Below are positions 5,698 to 55,116 of a stretch of 64,000 bases of DNA, one piece after another. Each line of letters starts with the position of its first letter. Position 1 is the stretch's first letter. The stretch spans positions 310,001 to 374,000 of the IMG/VR virus record IMGVR_UViG_3300029922_000001. The stretch is one strand, 5' to 3'. A model generated the notes under the pieces. That model saw only the letters and a list, made by a program, of their open reading frames with translations. It made no database searches and was not told the DNA's origin. Position numbers and translations under genes: made by a program.

Positions 5698-6024
5698 ATG
5701 GTTACACCAGAAGAAGAAAAAGAAATGCGCAAGAAGTTAGAAGCGCATGAAAATAGTATTGAAACGCCTTATAAACTGACATTAGAGTTTCAGTCCGAAG
5801 AGGTATTGAAGCACTTTATGATGGCAATGTGTGAAGGTGTTGAACAGGATTATTGGAATTGGGTTGACGAAAATGATAAATGGAAAGATCCAGTATTAAA
5901 GGGGTGCAGTCAACATCCTAGTATTAAATATGATTTCAAAAATTATAAAATTAAGTTTATTCACCATAATAATCAAGTAACTAAGGATCTTGGGTTTTAT
6001 TTGCCACCAGGTGAAGAATTGTAA
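5698..6024 (+). CDS. hypothetical phage protein
   Basis: 108-aa ORF in operon spacing. Confidence 0.65.
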   Translation: MVTPEEEKEMRKKLEAHENSIETPYKLTLEFQSEEVLKHFMMAMCEGVEQDYWNWVDENDKWKDPVLKGCSQHPSIKYDFKNYKIKFIHHNNQVTKDLGFYLPPGEEL

Positions 6025-6656
6025 TCTGTATCTAATAAATTGTGGTCATATTCCCAATGATGATTAGGACATAATGCCATAAGATTAGTTATGGCGTTAA
6101 TGTCAGTTATTAAGGCGTCATTATCAAAGCTTGCTACACTTTTAATATGACATACTTGACAATGTTTATCATAACCGCAGATTTGGCATGATTTAAATTT
6201 ACTATTATTTTTAGTTATTTTTCTAGCATGAGATTGAATCGAACATCTTGCTGCATCATAGTTTTTACTTGATGCAAAAAGATCACCTTTTGTTACCGAT
6301 TGATACATTGGATATTTTATTTGAGGTTCTGTTTTTTCTGTTTTTTCTTGATTTTTATTTTTAAAAATCGTGAAACATCTATGAGAACAAAATGCACGTT
6401 CATATTTTTTATATTTTTTGTTGTAATCTATTTGAATTTGATTTCTTTCAAAAGACTTTTTACATTCTTCGCAAATTAAAGTGGTCATTATATTTTTTTT
6501 TCTGAGTTGGCTATTGAGACATTGTTGAGAACAAACTGGACGATATTCACCTTTGCATTTATTTTTTCTATTATTATGTTGACACAATAATCTTTCAAAT
6601 TCTTTACTACAAACACTACATGTCAATGTAATTTTAGCTGCTTTACTTTGTTTCAT
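5997..6656 (-). CDS. free-standing HNH endonuclease with TRASH-like zinc fingers
   Basis: CSVC..F...CSQQC, CEECKKSF...FCSHRC; C-terminal CQICG...VCHIK...NLMALCPNHHWEYD. Confidence 0.85.
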   Translation of the reverse strand: MKQSKAAKITLTCSVCSKEFERLLCQHNNRKNKCKGEYRPVCSQQCLNSQLRKKNIMTTLICEECKKSFERNQIQIDYNKKYKKYERAFCSHRCFTIFKNKNQEKTEKTEPQIKYPMYQSVTKGDLFASSKNYDAARCSIQSHARKITKNNSKFKSCQICGYDKHCQVCHIKSVASFDNDALITDINAITNLMALCPNHHWEYDHNLLDTDYNSSPGGK

Positions 6657-6744
6657 ATTTTTGTATTATATATCTAATATAAAAGTTCCTCTAAGATTTA
6701 TATCAATAATAAAAAATGATGAAAAAATGTGGTAAATCTTAACG

Positions 6745-6758
6745 ATGATGGGTATAAT
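6745..6758 (+). promoter_or_regulatory. -10 box (TGGGTATAAT) driving ncRNA locus A
   Basis: TATAAT at 6753-6758, 5-6 nt before the tRNA-like unit. Confidence 0.7.
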
Positions 6759-6763
6759 ATATT

Positions 6764-6840
6764 TGCGGTTTAGAGTTCTAGTGAACTCACAAGTTTCATA
6801 AGCTTGTCCAGAATAGTGCGATTCTATTAACACGCACCCA
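6764..6840 (+). tRNA. deviant tRNA-like RNA, anticodon CAT, encoded CCA
   Basis: cloverleaf TGCGGTT-TA-GAGT(TCTAGTGA)ACTC-A-CAAGT(TTCATAA)GCTTG-TCCAG-AATAG(TGCGATT)CTATT-AACACGCA-C-CCA; bulged acceptor stem, no D-loop GG, T-loop TGC. Confidence 0.6.
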
Positions 6841-6849
6841 CGAGACTTG

Positions 6850-6914
6850 CTCTGAGAAAACCTGGTTAAAATTCGGTTTTCAGTTAGAAAATCTTTAAAG
6901 AATAGGACTCAGAG
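6850..6914 (+). ncRNA. tRNA-sized multi-arm RNA unit, possibly a degenerate tRNA
   Basis: 7-bp closing stem CTCTGAG/CTCAGAG with internal hairpin AAAACC/GGTTTT; CGAGA at 6919. Confidence 0.4.
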
Positions 6915-6918
6915 ATTG

Positions 6919-7181
6919 CGAGAATTTTATTTAGCAGTAATCAGGCTTAGTGTTGTTGAATCCTGAACAACATGAAAAGAATAAAAGATCGAATAAAGAT
7001 ACTCGTAAGAGTTGAGGGTTTCTAGCTTCCCCCAAAAAGTCTAGAGGACGAGAATTTATTCAGCAGTAGTTAAGCTAGTTTTGAGCGAATGGATCAAAAT
7101 GAAAAGAATAAACGATCATTAAGATACTTGCAAGAGTTGAGGGTTTTCTGGCTTTTCCCGCATAAAAGTTAAGGGACGAGA
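6919..7181 (+). ncRNA. two tandem ~130-nt structured RNA repeats
   Basis: shared blocks AGCAGTA.T.A.GCT, ATGAAAAGAATAAA.GATC, GATACT.G.AAGAGTTGAGGGTTT, GGACGAGA; stems differ in sequence but keep pairing. Confidence 0.7.
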
Positions 7182-7216
7182 GTTTTGTGTTTGTGTTTGT
7201 ATTTATATTGAATTGA

Positions 7217-7250
7217 AAGCCTTTGGAATTTTCCAAAGGCTTCTTTTTAT
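7217..7250 (+). terminator. intrinsic terminator of ncRNA locus A
   Basis: AAGCCTTTGGAA-TT-TTCCAAAGGCTT hairpin followed by a T-tract. Confidence 0.8.
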
Positions 7251-7258
7251 AATAGAGC

Positions 7259-7501
7259 ATGACTCAAATCGAAATTGATAACATCAAATCAGCAAAAGAA
7301 TTAAGGCATGAAGAAATTGCTCAAATTAAGACTCAAATTAATATTCTTAAAAAACAAAAAACAGAATTAGATTTACAAGATAACGCTATACAAAAAGCTA
7401 ATTCCGCAATATGTGACCATACATTACCAAATGGTAAAACAGCTTGGCAAGGTGGTTTTATGTTTAGTATATGTTCTATCTGCGATGACTGTGACTTATA
7501 A
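7259..7501 (+). CDS. hypothetical coiled-coil/zinc-ribbon protein
   Basis: CDH...CSICD; leaderless after TATAAT. Confidence 0.65.
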   Translation: MTQIEIDNIKSAKELRHEEIAQIKTQINILKKQKTELDLQDNAIQKANSAICDHTLPNGKTAWQGGFMFSICSICDDCDL

Positions 7502-8464
7502 TACTTTATTTAATTCATCACAAGTCCATTCAATTGCTGCTAGTGTGTTTAGTTTGTGTTCCCATCTAGTTGGGATTGCTTCATAACCATATATCAATCC
7601 TAAAATATTACCAGCTATAGCACCTGTACTATCTGAATCACCATCATGGTTTACAGCATTGACAACACCTGAAACAAAATCCTTTGATGTTAGCGCACAG
7701 TAAATAGCAATTGCTAACGCTTGCTCACCTATCCAACCTTGACCTAATATATTAAGCATAGGCATATTGAAATCTTTCTTTGCAAAGTTTAAAGCATGTT
7801 TAGAATAGAAGTATGTGTCGGTTTCACCAGTTACACTTTTAAGGTACTCTAGCGTCTGTTCTACAGCTTTAAATGGTTCAGTCTGGTTATCTAATAAGGA
7901 TATCAAATAAGCGAACGCTCCAGCAGAATAAATACCATCAGGGTGGTTATGTGATAGGTTAGCGGCTTCTACAGCAAAATCAAAAGCATCTTCTGGTTCA
8001 AAATATAAACCAATTGGAGCAGAACGCATAACCGCACCACAACCCTTTCTATCATTTGGGATAGGGAATTCAGCATTGTGTTCAATGAGATATTGAAATG
8101 AGGTTAAACACGTATGTCCAGCAGATTTATCTCCCCACATGCTTTGAAATTGTAATAGACCTTTTGTGTGTAATTTAGAATTATATTGTTTCTTTTGAGT
8201 TAAATACCATTTCTTATATTCTTCGCGAACGTTGTTAAGTCTTTGTTCTTCTGAGTCGCATGGCAAACTTAATGCATAAGCAGTAAATAGTGTTAACTGT
8301 GTATCATCAGTAATACAACCATCATCTCCATAAGCTGGGTGAATGTCTGTAATTCCGTTTTCTCCATATTGATTTAATATTTCAGATCGTGATTTAAACT
8401 CAACTGGTGCGCCTAATGCATCTCCAACCGCACCACCCATAATACAAGCTTTGACGTTATTCAT
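7496..8464 (-). CDS. ADP-ribosylglycohydrolase (DraG/ARH family)
   Basis: GGAVGDALGAPVEF, ITDDTQLT, KGCGAVMRSAPIGL, SHNHPDG, VNHDGDSDSTGAIAGNILG. Confidence 0.95.
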   Translation of the reverse strand: MNNVKACIMGGAVGDALGAPVEFKSRSEILNQYGENGITDIHPAYGDDGCITDDTQLTLFTAYALSLPCDSEEQRLNNVREEYKKWYLTQKKQYNSKLHTKGLLQFQSMWGDKSAGHTCLTSFQYLIEHNAEFPIPNDRKGCGAVMRSAPIGLYFEPEDAFDFAVEAANLSHNHPDGIYSAGAFAYLISLLDNQTEPFKAVEQTLEYLKSVTGETDTYFYSKHALNFAKKDFNMPMLNILGQGWIGEQALAIAIYCALTSKDFVSGVVNAVNHDGDSDSTGAIAGNILGLIYGYEAIPTRWEHKLNTLAAIEWTCDELNKVL

Positions 8465-8497: not shown

Positions 8498-9097
8498 ATG
8501 GACACATGGCTTACTGCCGATTGGCACTGCGGAGAAGACAGATTTAAACTTATGGGACGACCTTTTACGTCCCCACAACAAATGATTGATACATTAGTCG
8601 AAAACCATAACAAATTAGTAGCTCCTGATGCACATGTTTATATGTTAGGTGATGTTTGTGCTAGTCAACATCCTGAATATCTGGATCAAGTATCTCGTTT
8701 CAACGGTACCAAGGTTCTTTTGCGTGGGAACCATGATCGCGGAATTTCAGACAAAGAATTCTCACCTTATTTTCAAGAAATCATTCCAGAAGGCGAAGGA
8801 ATCTATATCGAATTTGGTGGTATTGATTGTTATCTAACACATTACCCAACTTGTGGTAAAAAAGACTGTTTTAATTTAGTTGGTCATGTCCATAACGCAT
8901 GGCGAATTCAGCTTAATATGCTTAATGTTGGGGTTGATGCTAATCATTTTATTCCAGTAAATACAAAAGTTATTCCAAGACACATTGAATCACTTGGTAA
9001 TTTCTATGATTTAGATGCTTTTGTGTGTTATGACGACATCAATACAAGTCATTGGGCTACCAGAGGGAAGAAAGAAAAATATTTTAACCGCCAATAG
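8498..9097 (+). CDS. calcineurin-like metallophosphoesterase
   Basis: TADWH, LGDV, LRGNHD, LTHYP, GHVH motifs. Confidence 0.9.
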   Translation: MDTWLTADWHCGEDRFKLMGRPFTSPQQMIDTLVENHNKLVAPDAHVYMLGDVCASQHPEYLDQVSRFNGTKVLLRGNHDRGISDKEFSPYFQEIIPEGEGIYIEFGGIDCYLTHYPTCGKKDCFNLVGHVHNAWRIQLNMLNVGVDANHFIPVNTKVIPRHIESLGNFYDLDAFVCYDDINTSHWATRGKKEKYFNRQ

Positions 9098-13538: not shown

Positions 13539-15371
13539 TTAGAATGTAAACCCTTCGGTTTTAGCCTTGGCGATTGTTGGATTATCAATTGGGCTAGTTC
13601 CTGTTCCGGTGTTACCGGTGGTTCCATTTGGCTCAATGCTGCCAGTTTGGGCAAGACTTCTAGAAGCTTGATATTTCTTTGTTGCTGCTATTGTTTCTGG
13701 TCCAATAATACCATCAATAGCGACTGGGAAGCCTTTATTAGTTAAGAATGTTTGCCATTGTTGAATGGTTGGTTTTTTAACGAATGGTTGTGCTTGACTT
13801 GTTGATCTATAGCTTTGTATTTGTTGATTGTAGTTCATTGCAAATTGTGCAAATTGAGGATTTCCATCAACGCTACCAACCAACCAAGGATATTTAGTTC
13901 TTAATTGAGGTAATGCATCTCTAAGTTTAATACCTTGTTTACCCATTGCAACCGCTTCTTGAACGGCTTGTGCCACGACTGGTGTCATTGGAGTGTTCAA
14001 AGACATATTGTTAGTATCTCTTATGTCTTTATGTTGTTGACTTTGTGGAACGACTGTTTTACCAAGAATGTCTAAACCACCACCAGTATCACCAGCAAAT
14101 TGTGCTAATTCAGCACCTTGATCTGCTCCAATACCAATAACACCTAAAGCACCAGCAATAGGTTGTAAACCAGGAATAATAGCTGAAATACTACCAAGAA
14201 AGTTTGCAAAAAATCCAATAAATTTAGCTCTTGTATATGCATCATTAGCTAAATCAATTTCTCCACCTTGAATTTTTTGACACCAACTATACGCTTCTGG
14301 AACCTGCATAATTAAACCAATAAAAGGTAAATATTTAGTGAATTTACTTAAAGCATTTAAGGCTGGCATAGATGCGCTAATCTTAGCTAATGCATTTGAA
14401 ATTACACTAGCAACTTCTGAATTTTTAGTTGCCGCCGCAGCAGCTTTATCTAATTCACCAGCAACATTACTAAGATTTTCAGCTTTGGCACTTAAACTAG
14501 CAATTTCTTGTGCGGCTTGAGGGTTATTCATTAATTCTGCATTATTTTTTAAAGCTTGTAGACGTTGAATAGCGGCTTGTTGTGCTTCTGGATTATCAGT
14601 TTTATTTAAGTCTTCTGCGATACTTGTTGCCCAATTTTGCTGTTTTAAATCTCCAGCAGCATTTGTAGTATTTGTGGCATTAGCAGCGGGAGTTGCAGCC
14701 GCATTAGCGGCAGGGGCAAGTTGTGTTAATGCTGCATCTGCTTGAGATGCAGCTTGTGTTGCAAGTTGTGTTTCTTGCGTGATAGCTTGTGCTAATTGTG
14801 GATTAGCTTTATATACTAATAGAAATTCAGGATCTTGAGTGGCTTTGGAAACAATTTGTGCTCCAATTTTACTAGCTAGAGCATTCATAACCAGGCTTTC
14901 ATTGCTTCCCATACCTCCAGCCGCAAAAAAAGCTATAGCTTCTCTAGAAATATTAACGCCCCGTTGTAACCATTTTTCTAAACCTACAGCATTCTTGTTT
15001 TTCATTAAATTGTAAAAAGATGGATATTTTTTTAATAATAAAGCTTCTACGTATTTTAATAATTCTCTAGTTGCCACACTTCTGGCTAGTCCACCTGGAT
15101 TATTCCAATCACCAAAAGCAATTTTAGAACCCAGATCAGTTAGGCTTTCACCTTGTGCTGGTGTACCTTTTGGCATATTTGGATTTAATAAAATATTAGA
15201 ATTCCCACCTGAAGGATCTATATTTTGTGTAGGTGAAATCATTGATGGCGATTGATTGAATGCGTTATTTGGATCAAGGAATCTTTGGGCAGTACGAATC
15301 ATATTGCGATCTATTTCATCAGCAAGGTGGTGAAATCCATTTTTATCTAAACTTCTAGCAATACTATCCAT
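13539..15371 (-). CDS. large probable virion protein with C-terminal peptidoglycan-binding domain
   Basis: leader IARSLDKNGFHHLADEID...TAQ; Ala/Gln-rich body; IQQWQTFL..KGF....DGIIGPETIAATKKYQ...L..TG. Confidence 0.75.
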   Translation of the reverse strand: MDSIARSLDKNGFHHLADEIDRNMIRTAQRFLDPNNAFNQSPSMISPTQNIDPSGGNSNILLNPNMPKGTPAQGESLTDLGSKIAFGDWNNPGGLARSVATRELLKYVEALLLKKYPSFYNLMKNKNAVGLEKWLQRGVNISREAIAFFAAGGMGSNESLVMNALASKIGAQIVSKATQDPEFLLVYKANPQLAQAITQETQLATQAASQADAALTQLAPAANAAATPAANATNTTNAAGDLKQQNWATSIAEDLNKTDNPEAQQAAIQRLQALKNNAELMNNPQAAQEIASLSAKAENLSNVAGELDKAAAAATKNSEVASVISNALAKISASMPALNALSKFTKYLPFIGLIMQVPEAYSWCQKIQGGEIDLANDAYTRAKFIGFFANFLGSISAIIPGLQPIAGALGVIGIGADQGAELAQFAGDTGGGLDILGKTVVPQSQQHKDIRDTNNMSLNTPMTPVVAQAVQEAVAMGKQGIKLRDALPQLRTKYPWLVGSVDGNPQFAQFAMNYNQQIQSYRSTSQAQPFVKKPTIQQWQTFLTNKGFPVAIDGIIGPETIAATKKYQASRSLAQTGSIEPNGTTGNTGTGTSPIDNPTIAKAKTEGFTF

Positions 15372-15512
15372 GTTTAATTAATTATGAATATGTTAAGTGT
15401 ATTCCTTGAAATAGTTCAAAAATGTGGATGTATAGATAGAAAACCGCAAGAAATATTAAGTATATTTCTTGCGGTTTTACTAACGTTAATTATTTCATCC
15501 AAGCCGTTATAT

Positions 15513-16754
15513 TTAAGGCAACGACTTGATGTAATCGTCTAAGTAACCTTGAACTAAATCACACAATGGTTTCTCACCATAACCAGTTTCTGCAAAGTAC
15601 TTGGGATCATTATATACAGTCAACTTTTTAGGTTGACGACGACCTTGAGATGTTGTATAAGCCAATAATATATCATCCATACTATTAACGATATCTTTCA
15701 CATTAGACTTAAAGAAATCTTTAGTTTGATCTAATGAACCTAATTTCCAATTACCTTGATTATCTACCAAAGCATAACCTAATGCGAACAAGAATGGATT
15801 CCAAAGATGCTTCGGAAATTCATATGGAACAATTTCATTAATGAAGTATAGCTTGCGATTACGTTTTACACCACCGCCACGCAAAAACTCTCCGGTTTTC
15901 GCATTACACAAAACGAGATTAGTAACGTCTTGTCTTTTATATGGATGACCAATGTTTCTGATTGGATAATTAAAAGTATTATTACCACAATAAATTTCAT
16001 ATTGCACATAATCCATAAACTGGAATTGTTCATAAAGATTAATTGCTGAAACATCTAGTAAAGTTCGTGACATTTTATCATTAAACCCAACAAGCGCAGG
16101 AAGAATTTGAGTCATATTTCGATATGATTGCGATGTTGTAACTAGGTTGTTAATCAAACCACTATTTTTAAAAATCTCAGTAATACTAACTTCACCTTTA
16201 TTTGTGATCCAACTAAATTTATCACCAAATGCCCCAAGGTGTTGTTTAATTTTATTAAATTTACCATTATATAAATCAAACGTTGTAGTTGTTACAGCCC
16301 TAGTCTTATTTAAAGTGATTGGCATCAAATTAGAGATATTAGCTGGTAATCCAACAACGAGATTAATCATAATTCCAGCTTCATTGGGAATTTCTGGATC
16401 TTGAGCCATGTTAATAAATTGTTCAAGCAAATGTCCACCATTCATTTGACCATCGTTAGGACCAAAAAATAGATCAACCGTTTTATTGGCATGATTAATT
16501 TTAAATGATGTACATGTCCCTGTTACGCCTTGTGATAAATATTGAAAATATTCAGGATATTTAATTGCGTTTTGCTTAATTTCCTTTTCTATTTCTTTAT
16601 TCTCATTAACATTAGGACCGCGCACATTATGAGAGGGAATAGTTTTCCCAGAATCATATAGTTTTTTAATGTGGGGCTTTTTAACAATCAATGAAAGCCG
16701 TTTGCCGCCTTCAAGTTCAGTGACAGAAGAATAATCGAGAGTGATTTTGTTCAT
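15513..16754 (-). CDS. AIPR-like (ParB-superfamily) protein
   Basis: NVRGPN....I...A...PEYFQYLSQGVT..C....GQMNGGH...I...LNKT pattern. Confidence 0.6.
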   Translation of the reverse strand: MNKITLDYSSVTELEGGKRLSLIVKKPHIKKLYDSGKTIPSHNVRGPNVNENKEIEKEIKQNAIKYPEYFQYLSQGVTGTCTSFKINHANKTVDLFFGPNDGQMNGGHLLEQFINMAQDPEIPNEAGIMINLVVGLPANISNLMPITLNKTRAVTTTTFDLYNGKFNKIKQHLGAFGDKFSWITNKGEVSITEIFKNSGLINNLVTTSQSYRNMTQILPALVGFNDKMSRTLLDVSAINLYEQFQFMDYVQYEIYCGNNTFNYPIRNIGHPYKRQDVTNLVLCNAKTGEFLRGGGVKRNRKLYFINEIVPYEFPKHLWNPFLFALGYALVDNQGNWKLGSLDQTKDFFKSNVKDIVNSMDDILLAYTTSQGRRQPKKLTVYNDPKYFAETGYGEKPLCDLVQGYLDDYIKSLP

Positions 16755-43601: not shown

Positions 43602-43672
43602 GTCTTAGAAGCATTTTGGTGATGCAAGGGACTCTAAATCCCTATAACGGAGTTCGAATCTCCGCTAAGACG
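43602..43672 (+). tRNA. amber suppressor tRNA (anticodon CTA)
   Basis: GTCTTAG-AA-GCAT(TTTGGTG)ATGC-A-AGGGA(CTCTAAA)TCCCT-ATAA-CGGAG(TTCGAAT)CTCCG-CTAAGAC-G; no encoded CCA. Confidence 0.9.
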
Positions 43673-43682
43673 CGAGAAAAAT

Positions 43683-44989: not shown

Positions 44990-45014
44990 CAAAGACTAGG
45001 AAGATGGGTATAAT
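44986..45014 (+). promoter_or_regulatory. consensus sigma70 promoter
   Basis: TTGACA-17-TATAAT. Confidence 0.85.
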
Positions 45015-45019
45015 GAATA

Positions 45020-45590
45020 CGTTGCAGGGTTGAGAGACTGTAGCTGGAGCCTCCTAAAAAGGTTTGGTTGGATTCCTTGTAAAAATCCAACATGAAACCG
45101 AGAGGAATGACCCATAACTTAGCAGACCTCTTTCTAGCGGGGGTTCTCGAAAAAGCTAGAAACCGAGGGGCTGTTCGATTTCAGCGATTGTAACCTTTCT
45201 TAGTAGGATTCTCGAAAACTAAGAACCGAGAAGGTGTATTAATGGCTTCTTTCCTGGTAGAAGTTCTCGAAAAACTAGGAACCGAGAGTTGATTTTAAGT
45301 TCAATCATTGCCTTGCTTGTTGGGTTCTCGAAAAAACAAGCTCCTTCCGAGATAGATCGTCTAACGATCACGCAGAAAAATAGTGGGGTGTTCTCGGACT
45401 CCAGGTACCAACTATGAAGTATGAAGTAAAGTAAACGAAAAATAATTGTCCCATGAGATTGGGTTGACCAACTCCGCAAGTTTAAGCGACTGATTAACTA
45501 TGCGTAAAAGTAAAAAGTGCAAATATTATAAATGGCGTAAGTAGTTTATTTTGCGAATTTTCCTCAGAAATGAGGGAAAACGAGAAAATA
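45020..45590 (+). ncRNA. ncRNA locus C with repeated TTCTCGAAA-loop hairpins or pseudoknots
   Basis: four units near 45128-45170, 45193-45235, 45245-45290 and 45312-45352, plus a fifth GTTCTCG loop near 45390; no credible ORF. Confidence 0.7.
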
Positions 45591-45607
45591 TGATGGTATA
45601 ATAAGTT

Positions 45608-46636
45608 ATACAAAAGAACATTGAAAATTGAATATGAGCCGCGCTCAATAAATATCGGAAAAGAACGGTAAAATTGAAGTTTAGTAAATTTAAATCCGTC
45701 ACCTAATCAGGTAAAAACATGAAAGTAAATAGATAATACGGAAATCATTAACTGCTTAGTCAGTTACTATCATTAAGGGGAAAGAAAGAATAAGATAGTC
45801 CACCGACGCGATACATATTAAAGTAGGGTACGAAATAGAAATATGAACGTATCTTGGAATTAATTTTCCAACGAGATTTGTTGAAAAACAAAATAGGGAT
45901 GGGATAGACCGAATAAACGCTTTTGGAGTCTGCAACAGTAGTTGTGACGATGAATTAAGAAGTTAGAAATAATAGTTCACTGGGCACCCATGCGAATTAA
46001 GGATGTCAAGATCGGGAAGGTGGCAAACTTCCCTTGCGAGATGTTAGAAATACTATAAAAGTACACCAACTTAGTTGTGGAAAATTAATTAATTCTAGCA
46101 CTCCGAGATTTATTAGGTGGCAAAACCGCAATATTTATAAGTTGCGTACCTAGCTGTAGGGTGATAGCCTATCCGTTTTTATAGGGTAAACATACAGTCT
46201 AATGAATCTCTAAATTGAAAACTGAATATGGAATAACACTCGCTCTAGAGCTATCGGCTTTTAAACAACCTGGTGCCAAAATAAAGTAACGGCTATAACT
46301 ATATAGTTAGTTTTCGAATTATAGTGAAAGGAATTAATATTCCTAACGAGATTTATATGATCGCAGATTCCGCTTGCAAACATAGTTGGTTTCGGGAGCG
46401 ACGTTAATGGGTATATCCCACGAGATTTTTACAGACTGTTTGATTGGATTATCTAACAAAACATAAAGAACATCAACACTAAACCGCAAAAGAAAGAGTC
46501 ATGTACTACCATGAACGCTTTTGCATTTTTACCATTCTGTTATTTGTTTGTAAGAATCTTCTGGAGCAATTGTAGTAGTTGCTTGGTTATTGTATCCCTT
46601 TCATTTCAATTTGCCCTACCCACAAGGTGGGGCAAA
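45608..46636 (+). ncRNA. large (~1 kb) ncRNA locus D
   Basis: own TGGTATAAT (-10 near 45597), boxA-like elements at 45616 and 46214, many hairpins, five hairpin-CGAGA ends, terminal hairpin 46610-46636. Confidence 0.65.
46610..46636 (+). terminator. terminator-like hairpin
   Basis: TTTGCCCTACC-CACAA-GGTGGGGCAAA. Confidence 0.6.
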
Positions 46637-54105: not shown

Positions 54106-55116
54106 ATGACAAAGACATTAGAACAAGAAATCAAACAATTAATTAAAATTTTTAATTTTAATTGTACTATTAACAAATTCGAAGATAAAGTTAATTGGGC
54201 TTATATTTCCAATAATCAAAAATTATCTGAAGAATTCATTGAAAAATATCAAGATAAAGTTAATTGGGCTTATATTTCTATTTATCAAAAACTATCTGAA
54301 GAATTCATTGAAAAATATCAAGATAAAGTTAATTTGGCTTATATTTCTATTTATCAAAAACTATCTGAAGAATTCATTAAGAAATATCAAGATAAAGTTA
54401 ATTGGACTTATATTTCCGAATATCAAAAATTATCTGAAGAATTCATTGAGAAATATCAAGATAAAGTTACTTGGGCTTATATTTTTATTTATCAAAAATT
54501 ATCTGAAGAATTCATTGAGAAATATCAAGATAAAGTTGATTGGGCTAGTATTTCCAATAATCAAAAATTATCTGAAGAATTCATTGAAAAATATCAAGAT
54601 AAAGTTACTTGGGCTTATATTTCCAATAATCAAAAATTATCTGAAGAATTCATTGAGAAATATCAAGATAAAGTTGATTGGGCTTATATTTCCAGTAATC
54701 AAAAATTATCTGAAGAATTCATTGAAAAATACAATTTAACTAAACCAATTAATAATTGGAATTATATTTCTAAAGAAGAAAAATTAGCAATAATCAAGAA
54801 ATGTGGATTATATGAAATTATTGATGATTATATTCTTGCTTATAAATCTACAAGAGAAGATGGATATTCTATTTATAATTATCAATATCAATATAAAGTC
54901 AGTGAAGAATATGAAGCACATTGTAATTGTAATATTGATAATGAAAATAGTTTTGGATTATCAGCTTGGACATATGATAAAGCTTTAAAATATCATAATA
55001 AAGGAGAATTATATAAAGTGAAAATCCATATAGATGATATTGGAGCATTAGTGCATAATGGTTTTAAATTAAGATGTAAAAAAATGAAAGTGTTAGAAAA
55101 AATGGAAATAAATTAA
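54106..55116 (+). CDS. tryptophan-repeat protein (8 x 23-aa QKLSEEFIEKYQDKVxW) with C-terminal domain
   Basis: direct reading of the repeats; class II promoter. Confidence 0.85.
   Translation: MTKTLEQEIKQLIKIFNFNCTINKFEDKVNWAYISNNQKLSEEFIEKYQDKVNWAYISIYQKLSEEFIEKYQDKVNLAYISIYQKLSEEFIKKYQDKVNWTYISEYQKLSEEFIEKYQDKVTWAYIFIYQKLSEEFIEKYQDKVDWASISNNQKLSEEFIEKYQDKVTWAYISNNQKLSEEFIEKYQDKVDWAYISSNQKLSEEFIEKYNLTKPINNWNYISKEEKLAIIKKCGLYEIIDDYILAYKSTREDGYSIYNYQYQYKVSEEYEAHCNCNIDNENSFGLSAWTYDKALKYHNKGELYKVKIHIDDIGALVHNGFKLRCKKMKVLEKMEIN
54181..54732 (+). repeat. 8 tandem 69-bp coding repeats
   Basis: CAAAAA(T/C)TATCTGAAGAATTCATT recurs every 69 nt. Confidence 0.95.

Follow-up and report, generated by a model that had tools for sequence, protein, structure and literature searches.

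What do two adjacent, similar and apparently non-coding segments of about 130 nucleotides do in the genome of a giant peat-bog phage, and why are they bounded by the same five letters? The segments lie in a window of 64,000 nucleotides (positions 310,001 to 374,000 of the 441-kb IMG/VR record IMGVR_UViG_3300029922_000001), and coordinates below refer to this window unless stated otherwise. An initial annotation made from the sequence alone had described them as a tandem pair of RNAs with covarying stems, bounded by CGAGA at 6919, 7049, and 7177, with the pattern expected of a selected fold that could not be matched to a recognized family. We find that this observation holds and that every sequence feature listed there is present, while the interpretation attached to it is only partly supported.

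Sequence and predicted structure of the tandem units

The two units are 130 and 128 nt long, and 104 of 140 columns are identical in an alignment made by hand, compared to 79% identity by blastn. A further CGAGA not listed previously sits at 6841, so that there are four copies in 340 nt compared to 0.33 per kb in the window and 0.18 per kb per strand in the genome. The stretch is non-coding, with at most 37 open codons (no ORF of 40 aa or more) on the + strand whether or not TAG is read as a stop, and it is bracketed by a promoter-like sequence and the only terminator-like site found between 6000 and 8000. The pair is therefore half of a four-unit operon (6764–7250), with the following features:

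6750–6758 (+), promoter-like GGGTATAAT with a −10 TATAAT at 6753–6758, 5 nt upstream of the first RNA
6764–6840 (+), degenerate tRNA-Met(CAU)-like RNA of 77 nt ending in CCCA, first unit of the operon
6841–6918 (+), 78-nt hairpin RNA unit starting with CGAGA, outer stem CTCTGAG/CTCAGAG
6919–7048 (+), unit 1, 130 nt, with predicted P1 6925–6932/6979–6986, P2 6933–6935/6945–6947, P3 6950–6957/6966–6973, GNRA hairpin 7002–7011, GAGGG 7014–7018, and 3′ hairpin 7022–7028/7037–7044 with a C-run at 7029–7033
7049–7176 (+), unit 2, 128 nt, paralogue of unit 1, with predicted P1 7055–7061/7106–7112, P3 7078–7084/7094–7100, GNRA hairpin 7127–7136, GAGGG 7139–7143, and 3′ hairpin 7149–7156/7164–7171 with CCC at 7157–7159
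7177–7216 (+), last CGAGA mark plus a GT-rich 3′ trailer separating unit 2 from the terminator
7217–7250 (+), intrinsic terminator with an 11-bp stem, a 4-nt loop, and a T-run
7259–7501 (+), downstream 80-aa ORF with a coiled-coil N-terminus and a Cys-rich C-terminus

The same promoter-like word, [GT]GGTATAAT, stands in front of other RNA genes of this genome (the tmRNA, the array at genome position 355006, the stretch upstream of the Ro60 gene, and tRNA-Leu), though its function is inferred from the consensus only. The tRNA-Met-like unit is found by ARAGORN only at relaxed thresholds and not at default, and it is missed by the Rfam tRNA model at E up to 10. Its acceptor stem has two mismatches and its T-loop is non-canonical, but the minimum-energy fold is a cloverleaf (z −2.2), and its 5′ 62 to 65 nt are 78% to 79% identical to tRNA-Met regions of Salmonella and Escherichia phages. 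The minimum-energy fold of the 78-nt unit has −19.2 kcal/mol (z −1.4).

Within the pair, conserved blocks alternate with stems that change while keeping pairing. The stem TGTTGTT/AACAACA of unit 1 (6951–6957/6966–6972) corresponds to TTTTGA/TCAAAA in unit 2 with two both-sided compensations (G-C to U-A and U-A to A-U), the GNRA hairpins read CTC-GTAA-GAG (7002–7011) and CTT-GCAA-GAG (7127–7136), and the 3′ hairpins are CTAGCTT/AAG-T-CTAG (7022–7044) and TGGCTTTT/AAAAGTTA (7149–7171), each with a C-run in the loop that could pair with the invariant GAGGG. To see whether this exceeds chance, we projected the minimum-energy fold of unit 1 alone onto unit 2. Using the MAFFT alignment, which misplaces stem P3, 25 of 35 pairs are kept, 4 of them with both-sided changes (joint P 0.004), while 32 of 37 are kept using the hand alignment (joint P 0.0003). 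The reverse control, unit 2's own minimum-energy fold projected onto unit 1, is at chance (P about 0.35). RNAalifold returns P1, P2, P3, the GNRA hairpin, and the GGG/CCC pairing, and pair probabilities are 0.59 to 0.96 for all five helices in unit 1. However, these comparisons rest on only two sequences, single-sequence folding z-scores are unremarkable, and the shared fold in unit 2 reaches just −9.9 kcal/mol against a minimum of −21.6 (i.e., 11.7 kcal/mol above it) with low pair probabilities. The pseudoknot between CCC and GAGGG that had been proposed can be neither supported nor refuted, because both partners are invariant in the two copies.

The failure to match a known family is confirmed for Rfam 15, given that the window yields only two tRNAs elsewhere at gathering scores and that positions 6600–7400 searched at E up to 10 yield only weak hits on the terminator, none of them inside 6919–7147. 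Units 1 and 2 are also not recognized as tRNAs: ARAGORN at relaxed thresholds finds only 6764–6840 within 6701–7300, the Rfam tRNA model RF00005 gives no hit, P1 is closed by an internal strand, there is no T-arm inside the junction, and the P3 loops are 8 to 9 nt.

A genome-wide CGAGA mark

Contrary to its initial description as the boundary of this motif, CGAGA is a punctuation mark found across the genome. Of 24 tRNAs found by ARAGORN, 23 are followed at once by CGAGA and the 24th by CGAGT two bases on, where the chance per tRNA is about 6e-4. The motif abuts N73, N73-C, or N73-CCA. It also follows a small ORF and separates every unit of several non-coding arrays, including non-tRNA segments. 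The first unit of an array has no CGAGA before it, while the last unit of every array has one after it, so it is a 3′ mark. The operon described here, with CGAGA at each unit end on the strand of a promoter-to-terminator non-coding stretch, belongs to these arrays.

The mark is avoided in protein-coding messages. In 358 ORFs, sense CGAGA occurs 21 times against 85 expected (z −7.9), while the antisense word TCTCG occurs 68 times against 76 expected. The core CGAG has an observed-to-expected ratio of 0.25, the lowest of all 256 tetramers apart from the palindrome GGCC, with the antisense word only mildly depleted (0.73). CGAG is depleted in all three frames, while CGAA, CGAT, CGAC, TGAG, and AGAG are not. 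Two contigs that carry the punctuation, L293 and L294, show a ratio of 0.17, whereas L281, a contig of a distant relative, has neither punctuation nor depletion (0.89). CGAG also occurs inside several T-loops (TTCGAGTCC), so recognition must depend on context.

Searches for relatives, expression, and a nuclease

No independent homologue of the units was found in IMG/VR, GenBank phages, 185k species genomes, or JGI metagenomes, so that the covariation rests on two paralogues. An exact 14-mer from the most conserved block matched at least 117 loci in IMG/VR, none of them similar to the units by blastn. A distant blastn search of the whole operon against 50,697 GenBank phages returned only the tRNA-like 5′ part, on tRNA-Met regions, and an nhmmer profile of the two units found nothing beyond these two in the whole genome and in L293 and L294. 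Neither the neighboring ADP-ribosylglycohydrolase nor the 80-aa ORF has relatives in IMG/VR, and the latter matches no Pfam or PHROG family. Relatives of the glycohydrolase at 52% to 60% identity were found in a set of 5.8 billion proteins, but no homologous RNA is evident on their contigs (L281 to L286), and the three tRNAs of L281 end in ACCA followed by AAT or ACT, with no CGAGA following them. Pattern scans for the punctuation gave 36 hits in IMG/VR, at least 120 in species genomes, and 19 in JGI metagenomes, all of them chance matches or integration-site remnants except two contigs of the same peat sample that are probably the rest of this same genome. Four other peat DNA runs hold identical sequence at low depth without variants, and no RNA run was listed. 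Literature searches on phage tRNA-array trailers and small RNAs found nothing on a CGAGA mark.

We also searched the 441-kb record for enzymes that might cut at the mark or act on the ends. No RegB (REGB_T4), MazF/PemK, ToxN (PF13958), PolyA_pol (CCA-adding), Lactamase_B_2 (metallo-beta-lactamase of the RNase Z type), RNase E/G, or RtcB was found, though the negatives for RegB and ToxN are weak since these searches were silent in the control genomes too. The ORFs flanking both arrays have no informative Pfam family. A neighboring Metallophos protein is encoded at 8498–9097.

Interpretation

The explanation that we favor, as somewhat more likely than not overall, is that the feature comprises two sister genes for structured small RNAs of about 130 nt, the third and fourth units of one non-coding operon composed of a sigma-70-like promoter, a degenerate tRNA-Met-like RNA, a 78-nt hairpin RNA, unit 1, unit 2, a short trailer, and an intrinsic terminator. 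In this view, the primary transcript would be cut at or next to CGAG(A), most simply just 5′ of the C, by a trans-acting sequence-specific endoribonuclease of the phage or the host, and the same cut would define the 3′ end of every phage tRNA and release the individual RNAs. Each unit would fold into a 5′ three-way junction that reads like a tRNA without its T-arm (a 7–8 bp acceptor-like P1, UA, a short D-like arm, a 7–8 bp P3, and a 5-nt variable stretch), a GNRA-capped hairpin, and a 3′ hairpin whose C-rich loop can pair with the invariant GAGGG, which is also the 5′ strand of T-arms in this genome. A tRNA ancestry is suggested by the tRNA-Met-like first unit and by TTGAGGGTT of both units, which equals the T-arm 5′ strand of two tRNA-like units at genome positions 274919 and 275013. 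Our analysis demonstrates the anatomy of the sequence, the punctuation across the genome, its avoidance in mRNA, and the covariation between the paralogues, while transcription, cutting, folding, and function are inferred. We are fairly confident that these are real RNA genes and consider a trans-acting nuclease at CGAG(A) rather likely, but the suggestion that they are stable, tRNA-derived trans-acting RNAs serving as a mimic, decoy, or protein scaffold in tRNA or translation metabolism is no more than a doubtful best guess.

If this reading is right, the units are a new structured RNA family without a match in Rfam, in a group of viruses (phages above 400 kb) whose non-coding repertoire is almost unexplored. 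A bare word of 4 to 5 nt would define the 3′ end of every tRNA and small RNA of a genome, a processing logic different from the structure-guided RNase P/RNase Z route, and the 4-fold, strand-specific, and frame-independent purge of CGAG from the messages would be a clean genomic footprint of an RNA-level selective agent that offers a way to find the enzyme and possibly a host-shutoff or anti-defense mechanism. A compact sequence-specific RNA cutter with a natural multiplexed array format would also interest tool builders. If it is wrong, the pair is a lineage-specific oddity. A more far-reaching and improbable version, though not excluded, is that the phage runs a private RNA punctuation code in which a dedicated endoribonuclease cuts single-stranded CGAG(A), matures every phage tRNA and a repertoire of novel small RNAs from polycistronic arrays, and can selectively destroy host transcripts because phage messages have purged CGAG. 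A protein would be the simplest candidate for this enzyme, but an RNA-guided one using the UUCUCG-loop hairpin RNAs of the second array is possible, and units 1 and 2 would be a new class of tRNA-derived structured RNA within this regulon.

Alternative explanations

Each of the alternatives that we considered seems unlikely. The units could be decaying duplicates, such as tRNA-derived pseudogenes or a duplicated spacer, carried along in the operon with no function of their own, whose preserved pairing is left over from a recent duplication. This would fit the presence of only two copies without homologues, the degenerate tRNA at the start of the operon, and the thermodynamic preference of unit 2 for another fold, and by our rough estimate identical runs of 14 to 16 nt are not beyond chance at about 26% divergence. 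However, at about 22% to 26% divergence the changes inside unit 1's helices keep pairing far more often than random placement allows, with 2 to 4 both-sided compensations, and both copies keep intact CGAGA marks, GNRA loops, and the GAGGG/C-run pair. A stop or 3′-end signal for a phage RNA polymerase, with each unit still a small RNA gene but made singly and restarted from the A/T-rich spacer, would explain the position of the mark at 3′ ends and its avoidance in mRNA as well as cleavage does, and the spacers are indeed purely A/T and often end in TAT before the +1 G of the tRNA. Yet no 4–5-nt terminator of this kind is known while endoribonuclease sites of 3 to 7 nt are (MazF and RegB), spacers vary in sequence and length (9 to 15 nt), units 1 and 2 have no TATG, and arrays start with an ordinary TATAAT promoter and end with an ordinary hairpin terminator, which leaves this option improbable. 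About as doubtful is a decoy or antitoxin array in the manner of ToxI repeats or phage pseudo-ToxI that would neutralize an endoribonuclease of a host defense or of the phage itself. Its layout of promoter, tandem structured repeats, terminator, and small gene is present, each repeat is bounded by the presumed cleavage motif, and a pseudoknot is possible, but the downstream ORF has no ToxN-like or other family match and the same motif bounds tRNAs and many unrelated RNAs.

Even less support exists for Y-RNA-like partners of the TROVE/Ro60 (Rsr) protein that the phage encodes at genome positions 14878–16542. Y RNAs are 80 to 130 nt, often occur in several copies per genome, and bacterial ones contain tRNA-like domains (PMC4201824), but the units (genome positions 316919–317176) lie about 300 kb from this gene whereas reported YrlA genes lie within 4 kb (PMC4201824). 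Furthermore, a separate 230-nt stretch running from a promoter to a terminator sits directly upstream of the Ro60 gene, no Rfam match to Y RNA was found there or in the units (the latter at E up to 10, YrlA included), and no long stem joining the 5′ and 3′ ends, which in Y RNAs carries the Ro60 site, appears in the minimum-energy, centroid, or consensus folds. Tandem riboswitch aptamers controlling the downstream gene are similarly unlikely: two similar aptamer-sized folds with GNRA loops do precede a terminator and an ORF, and GGCTTT (7150–7155) could pair with AAAGCC (7216–7221), but about 40 nt of GT-rich spacer and a CGAGA mark separate unit 2 from a self-contained 11-bp terminator, the units share an operon and punctuation with tRNA-like RNAs, no riboswitch family matches, and the ORF has no known function that would suggest a ligand. 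Least likely are ribozymes cutting at their own boundaries, as implied by the initial annotation. Repeats bounded by a fixed pentamer and a compact fold with GNRA loops and a possible pseudoknot make this conceivable, but no ribozyme family matches at E up to 10, small self-cleaving classes such as hammerhead, HDV-like/theta, twister, pistol, and hatchet included, and a cut at CGAGA cannot depend on the units' fold when the mark follows tRNAs, a small ORF, and many unrelated segments that share no upstream or downstream structure.

Comparison with known systems

The small stable RNAs of the phage T4 tRNA cluster (species 1 and 2, rnaC/rnaD) are likewise phage-encoded RNAs of about 120 to 140 nt without known function that are co-transcribed with tRNA genes and released by processing of a common precursor. 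As far as is known, the T4 precursors are matured by general host tRNA enzymes and not at a fixed pentamer, and genome-wide motif avoidance is not known in T4. Bacterial and phage Y RNAs (YrlA/Yrn1) bound by Ro60/Rsr share the size range, the possible occurrence in several copies, tRNA-like modules, and the presence of a Ro60 gene in the same genome, but the units studied here are not near that gene, match no covariance model, and have neither a stem joining the 5′ and 3′ ends nor a canonical T-loop. In type III toxin-antitoxin arrays (ToxI/ToxN, CptIN, and TenpIN), a promoter, tandem structured and pseudoknotted RNA repeats, and a terminator are combined with cutting at a short fixed sequence by a sequence-specific endoribonuclease, but there several repeats of 34 to 45 nt directly precede the nuclease gene (of ToxN/AbiQ/CptN type), whereas here two units of 130 and 128 nt are followed by an ORF that matches no ToxN-like family and the mark also serves the tRNAs. 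Short-motif endoribonucleases such as T4 RegB (GGAG) and the MazF family (words of 3 to 7 nt) act on single-stranded RNA words that are depleted strand-specifically in the transcripts that must survive, but no RegB or MazF/PemK homologue was found in this genome, CGAG specificity is not known, and the use of such a site as the universal mark of tRNA 3′ ends is not known to have been described. Finally, mitochondrial tRNA punctuation and CRISPR pre-crRNA processing also cut a polycistronic non-coding precursor into units at regularly recurring signals, but there the signal is a folded tRNA or a repeat hairpin of 28 to 37 nt, while here it is a bare pentamer that follows the tRNAs.

Genomic context and sequence anatomy of the paired RNA units

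The window occupies bases 310001-374000 of a 441,498-bp IMG/VR virus record with 34% G+C, and the public runs that hold it are peat metagenomes plus a few lake-water runs. The paired units lie in a 600-nt gap between an HNH-endonuclease ORF on the minus strand (5997-6656) and an 80-aa ORF (7259-7501), with genes for a tyrosyl-tRNA synthetase, a nucleoside deoxyribosyltransferase, an ADP-ribosylglycohydrolase (7496-8464) and a calcineurin-like phosphoesterase (8498-9097) nearby. Further along, at 54182-54731, the window holds eight tandem copies of a 69-nt unit (91% matches) that presumably encode a 23-residue protein repeat. We read the stretch between the two ORFs as one predicted non-coding operon composed of the following parts:

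6750-6758, promoter-like GGGTATAAT, a word that recurs before other RNA genes
6764-6840, tRNA-Met(CAU)-like RNA, 77 nt
6841-6918, 78-nt hairpin RNA
6919-7048, unit 1
7049-7176, unit 2
after unit 2, a 40-nt trailer
7217-7250, the only intrinsic terminator of the region

Every sequence feature listed in the initial annotation is present: CGAGA stands at 6919, 7049 and 7177, and the listed stems, the two GNRA loops (GTAA and GCAA) and the C-run facing an invariant GAGGG are all found. The two units share 104 of 140 columns in our hand alignment and are 79% identical by blastn. The stretch has no coding capacity on the plus strand, with or without TAG read as a stop. Rfam 15 returned nothing for the units, either at gathering score or at E up to 10, the only weak hits being located on the terminator, and a profile of the two units found no third copy in the genome.

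Evidence for a shared predicted fold

Single-sequence folding z-scores are unremarkable on both strands. We therefore took the minimum-energy fold of unit 1 alone, which is blind to unit 2, and projected it onto unit 2. With the MAFFT alignment, 25 of 35 pairs survive, four of them with changes on both sides, and the joint probability under random placement of the same number of changes is 0.004. With our hand alignment, 32 of 37 pairs survive, with two both-sided changes (both in P3) and four one-sided changes, and the joint probability is 0.0003. The mirror control, in which unit 2's own minimum-energy fold is projected onto unit 1, is at chance (P about 0.35), and the shared fold in unit 2 is at -9.9 kcal/mol against a minimum of -21.6, with low pair probabilities. 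RNAalifold on either alignment returns P1, P2, P3, the GNRA hairpin and GGG/CCC. It thus seems likely that a common fold has been selected, though this rests on two sequences; the possible GAGGG/C-run pairing never varies and so provides no test of itself. The interpretation offered in the initial annotation, a pair of selected RNA folds of no recognized family bounded by CGAGA, is partly supported, since the pentamer turned out not to be peculiar to this motif.

CGAGA marks predicted RNA 3' ends throughout the genome

A fourth CGAGA lies at 6841, directly after the tRNA-Met(CAU)-like sequence. ARAGORN finds this sequence only at relaxed settings and the Rfam tRNA model misses it, but it still folds as a cloverleaf and is 78-79% identical over its 5' two-thirds to phage tRNA-Met regions. 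In the whole genome, 23 of 24 tRNAs are followed at once by CGAGA, while the 24th has CGAGT two bases on (the chance per tRNA is about 6e-4). This holds in arrays and for solitary tRNAs alike, and whether the gene ends at the discriminator, at N73-C or at an encoded CCA. Two of these tRNAs (window 43602-43673 and genome 172128-172200) have the anticodon CUA (called tRNA-Pyl by ARAGORN) and would read TAG, suggesting possible TAG suppression or recoding in part of the genome; both are followed by CGAGA, and at 43673 the ATG of the next ORF comes 8 nt later. The exception is the tmRNA gene (genome 293574-293927), which has an unusual tag (GKSYAYVG) and is the one tRNA-type or tmRNA gene called by ARAGORN in this genome that is not followed by CGAGA.

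The first unit of each array has no CGAGA before it and the last unit has one after it, so the mark belongs to 3' ends. Spacers consist of CGAGA followed by 4-10 A/T bases. Arrays also hold non-tRNA segments between marks:

genome 7962 and 8086, segments of 124 and 87 nt
genome 172368-172702, a 335-nt well-folding RNA between tRNA-Lys and tRNA-Gln, with ends that pair over 12 bp, a minimum-energy fold of -86.8 kcal/mol (z -2.8) and no Rfam match at E up to 0.1
genome 275173-275381 (minus strand), a 209-nt piece inside a tRNA array, bounded by CGAGA on both sides, with a small ORF of about 57 codons and its own GGAG ribosome-binding site, which would be a short message excised from a tRNA precursor
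window 44990-46510 (genome 354990-356510; approximate ends), a 1.5-kb non-coding array with no plus-strand ORF of 43 aa or more

The last of these starts with a GGGTATAAT promoter and holds CGAGA-bounded segments of 128, 56, 65, 233, 291, 165, 67, 243 and 74 nt, none of them a tRNA. The first four or five carry hairpins whose loops read GKTTCTCGAAAAA, the exact complement of CGAGAA, which makes them possible guides, decoys or intramolecular partners of the punctuation mark. CGAGA also follows G+C-rich hairpins and precedes GGTATAMT promoter-like words between protein genes (window 44106, i.e., genome 354106, and genome 387013), so that the mark may trim mRNA 3' ends too. Of 180 CGAGA in the genome, 61 lie in arrays or after tRNAs, 20 in ORF sense, 67 in ORF antisense and 32 elsewhere.

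Strand-specific avoidance of CGAG in coding sequences

Against synonymous-codon shuffles of 358 ORFs (343 kb), sense-strand CGAGA occurs 21 times where 85 are expected (z -7.9), while its complement occurs 68 times against 76. Among all 256 tetramers, CGAG has the lowest observed/expected ratio (0.25) after the palindrome GGCC, with its complement CTCG at 0.73. The depletion holds in all three frames (26/86, 22/63 and 15/101 observed/expected), and close relatives of the word are not depleted (CGAA 0.92, CGAT 0.81, CGAC 0.82, TGAG 1.04). A non-palindromic word that is purged from the sense strand only and in every frame points to selection on RNA, not on DNA. The near absence of GGCC from ORFs (1 observed, 181 expected) and the ratio of 0.57 for TCGA are palindrome avoidances typical of escape from restriction enzymes, and the depletion of AGGAG and GGAGG is avoidance of internal Shine-Dalgarno sequences.

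Two further contigs of the same peat metagenome, L293 (Ga0302280_1000099, 78,352 bp) and L294 (15,054 bp), carry the punctuation (8 of 10 tRNAs followed by CGAGA, one by CGAGT), show the same depletion (0.17) and encode tRNAs that are missing from the 441-kb record (Arg, Asn, Asp, Phe). However, 441,498 bp plus 78,352 bp is close to the 521,591-bp contig on record for the glycohydrolase. L293 is therefore probably the rest of this same genome and not an independent witness, and the 441-kb record is probably incomplete despite its 100% completeness estimate. The distant relative L281, a contig whose ADP-ribosylglycohydrolase is 52% identical to that of this phage, has three tRNAs ending in ACCA followed by AAT or ACT, with no CGAGA following them, and shows no depletion (0.89). 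No independent relatives with the RNA or the punctuation were found in IMG/VR, GenBank phages, species genomes (partial scan) or JGI metagenomes, and other samples hold identical sequence.

Inferred processing of the operon transcript

The most economical mechanism is that a transcript of ~480 nt is cut at or just before each CGAG(A) by a trans-acting sequence-specific endoribonuclease; with no expression data in the runs examined, both the transcript and the cut are inferred from sequence alone. Cutting 5' of the C would leave N73, N73-C or N73-CCA ends, all of which are, by established tRNA biology, legitimate substrates or products of a CCA-adding enzyme, though no phage copy of that enzyme was found. 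No candidate for the nuclease itself emerged, as there is no RegB, MazF/PemK, ToxN, RNase Z-type or RNase E/G family in the record, although the RegB and ToxN controls were silent. The family of the neighboring calcineurin-like phosphoesterase includes RNA end-healing enzymes, which would be needed if the cut leaves cyclic phosphate ends, but this link is pure inference. A transcription stop signal would fit the same data; we rank it lower because no terminator of 4-5 nt is known to us and because the arrays begin and end with ordinary promoter and terminator signals.

Possible functions and comparison with known RNAs

On the evidence of sequence, we regard the two units as a genuine and so far unclassified pair of small RNA genes, of greater interest for the genome-wide punctuation that they exposed than for the covariation alone. 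The predicted 5' half of each reads like a tRNA without its T-arm, with a 7-8-bp P1, then UA, a 3-bp stem with a 9-nt loop, a 7-8-bp P3, a 5-nt stretch and the returning P1 strand. In the 3' half, TTGAGGGTT equals the 5' strand of T-arms of two tRNA-like units elsewhere in the genome, and the operon opens with a decayed tRNA. We therefore favor tRNA-derived, stable, trans-acting RNAs that would serve as mimic, decoy or protein scaffold, but hold this view with low confidence, as the step to function is inferred and not shown by the analysis.

Among the alternatives, decaying duplicates remain possible though improbable. Self-cleaving ribozymes are unlikely because CGAGA follows many unrelated RNAs, and a tandem riboswitch is unlikely because a spacer and a punctuation mark separate unit 2 from a self-contained terminator. 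The idea of Y-RNA-like molecules gains from a Ro60/TROVE (Rsr) gene of 554 aa in the genome (14878-16542), but loses on distance (300 kb, against 4 kb or less in PMC4201824), on fold and on the lack of a model match. Directly upstream of that gene (genome 14637-14870), a 230-nt non-coding stretch running from a promoter to a terminator is itself a candidate Y RNA, though Rfam gives no Y RNA or YrlA match. A ToxI-like antitoxin array shares the layout of the operon but neither the unit size nor the toxin gene.
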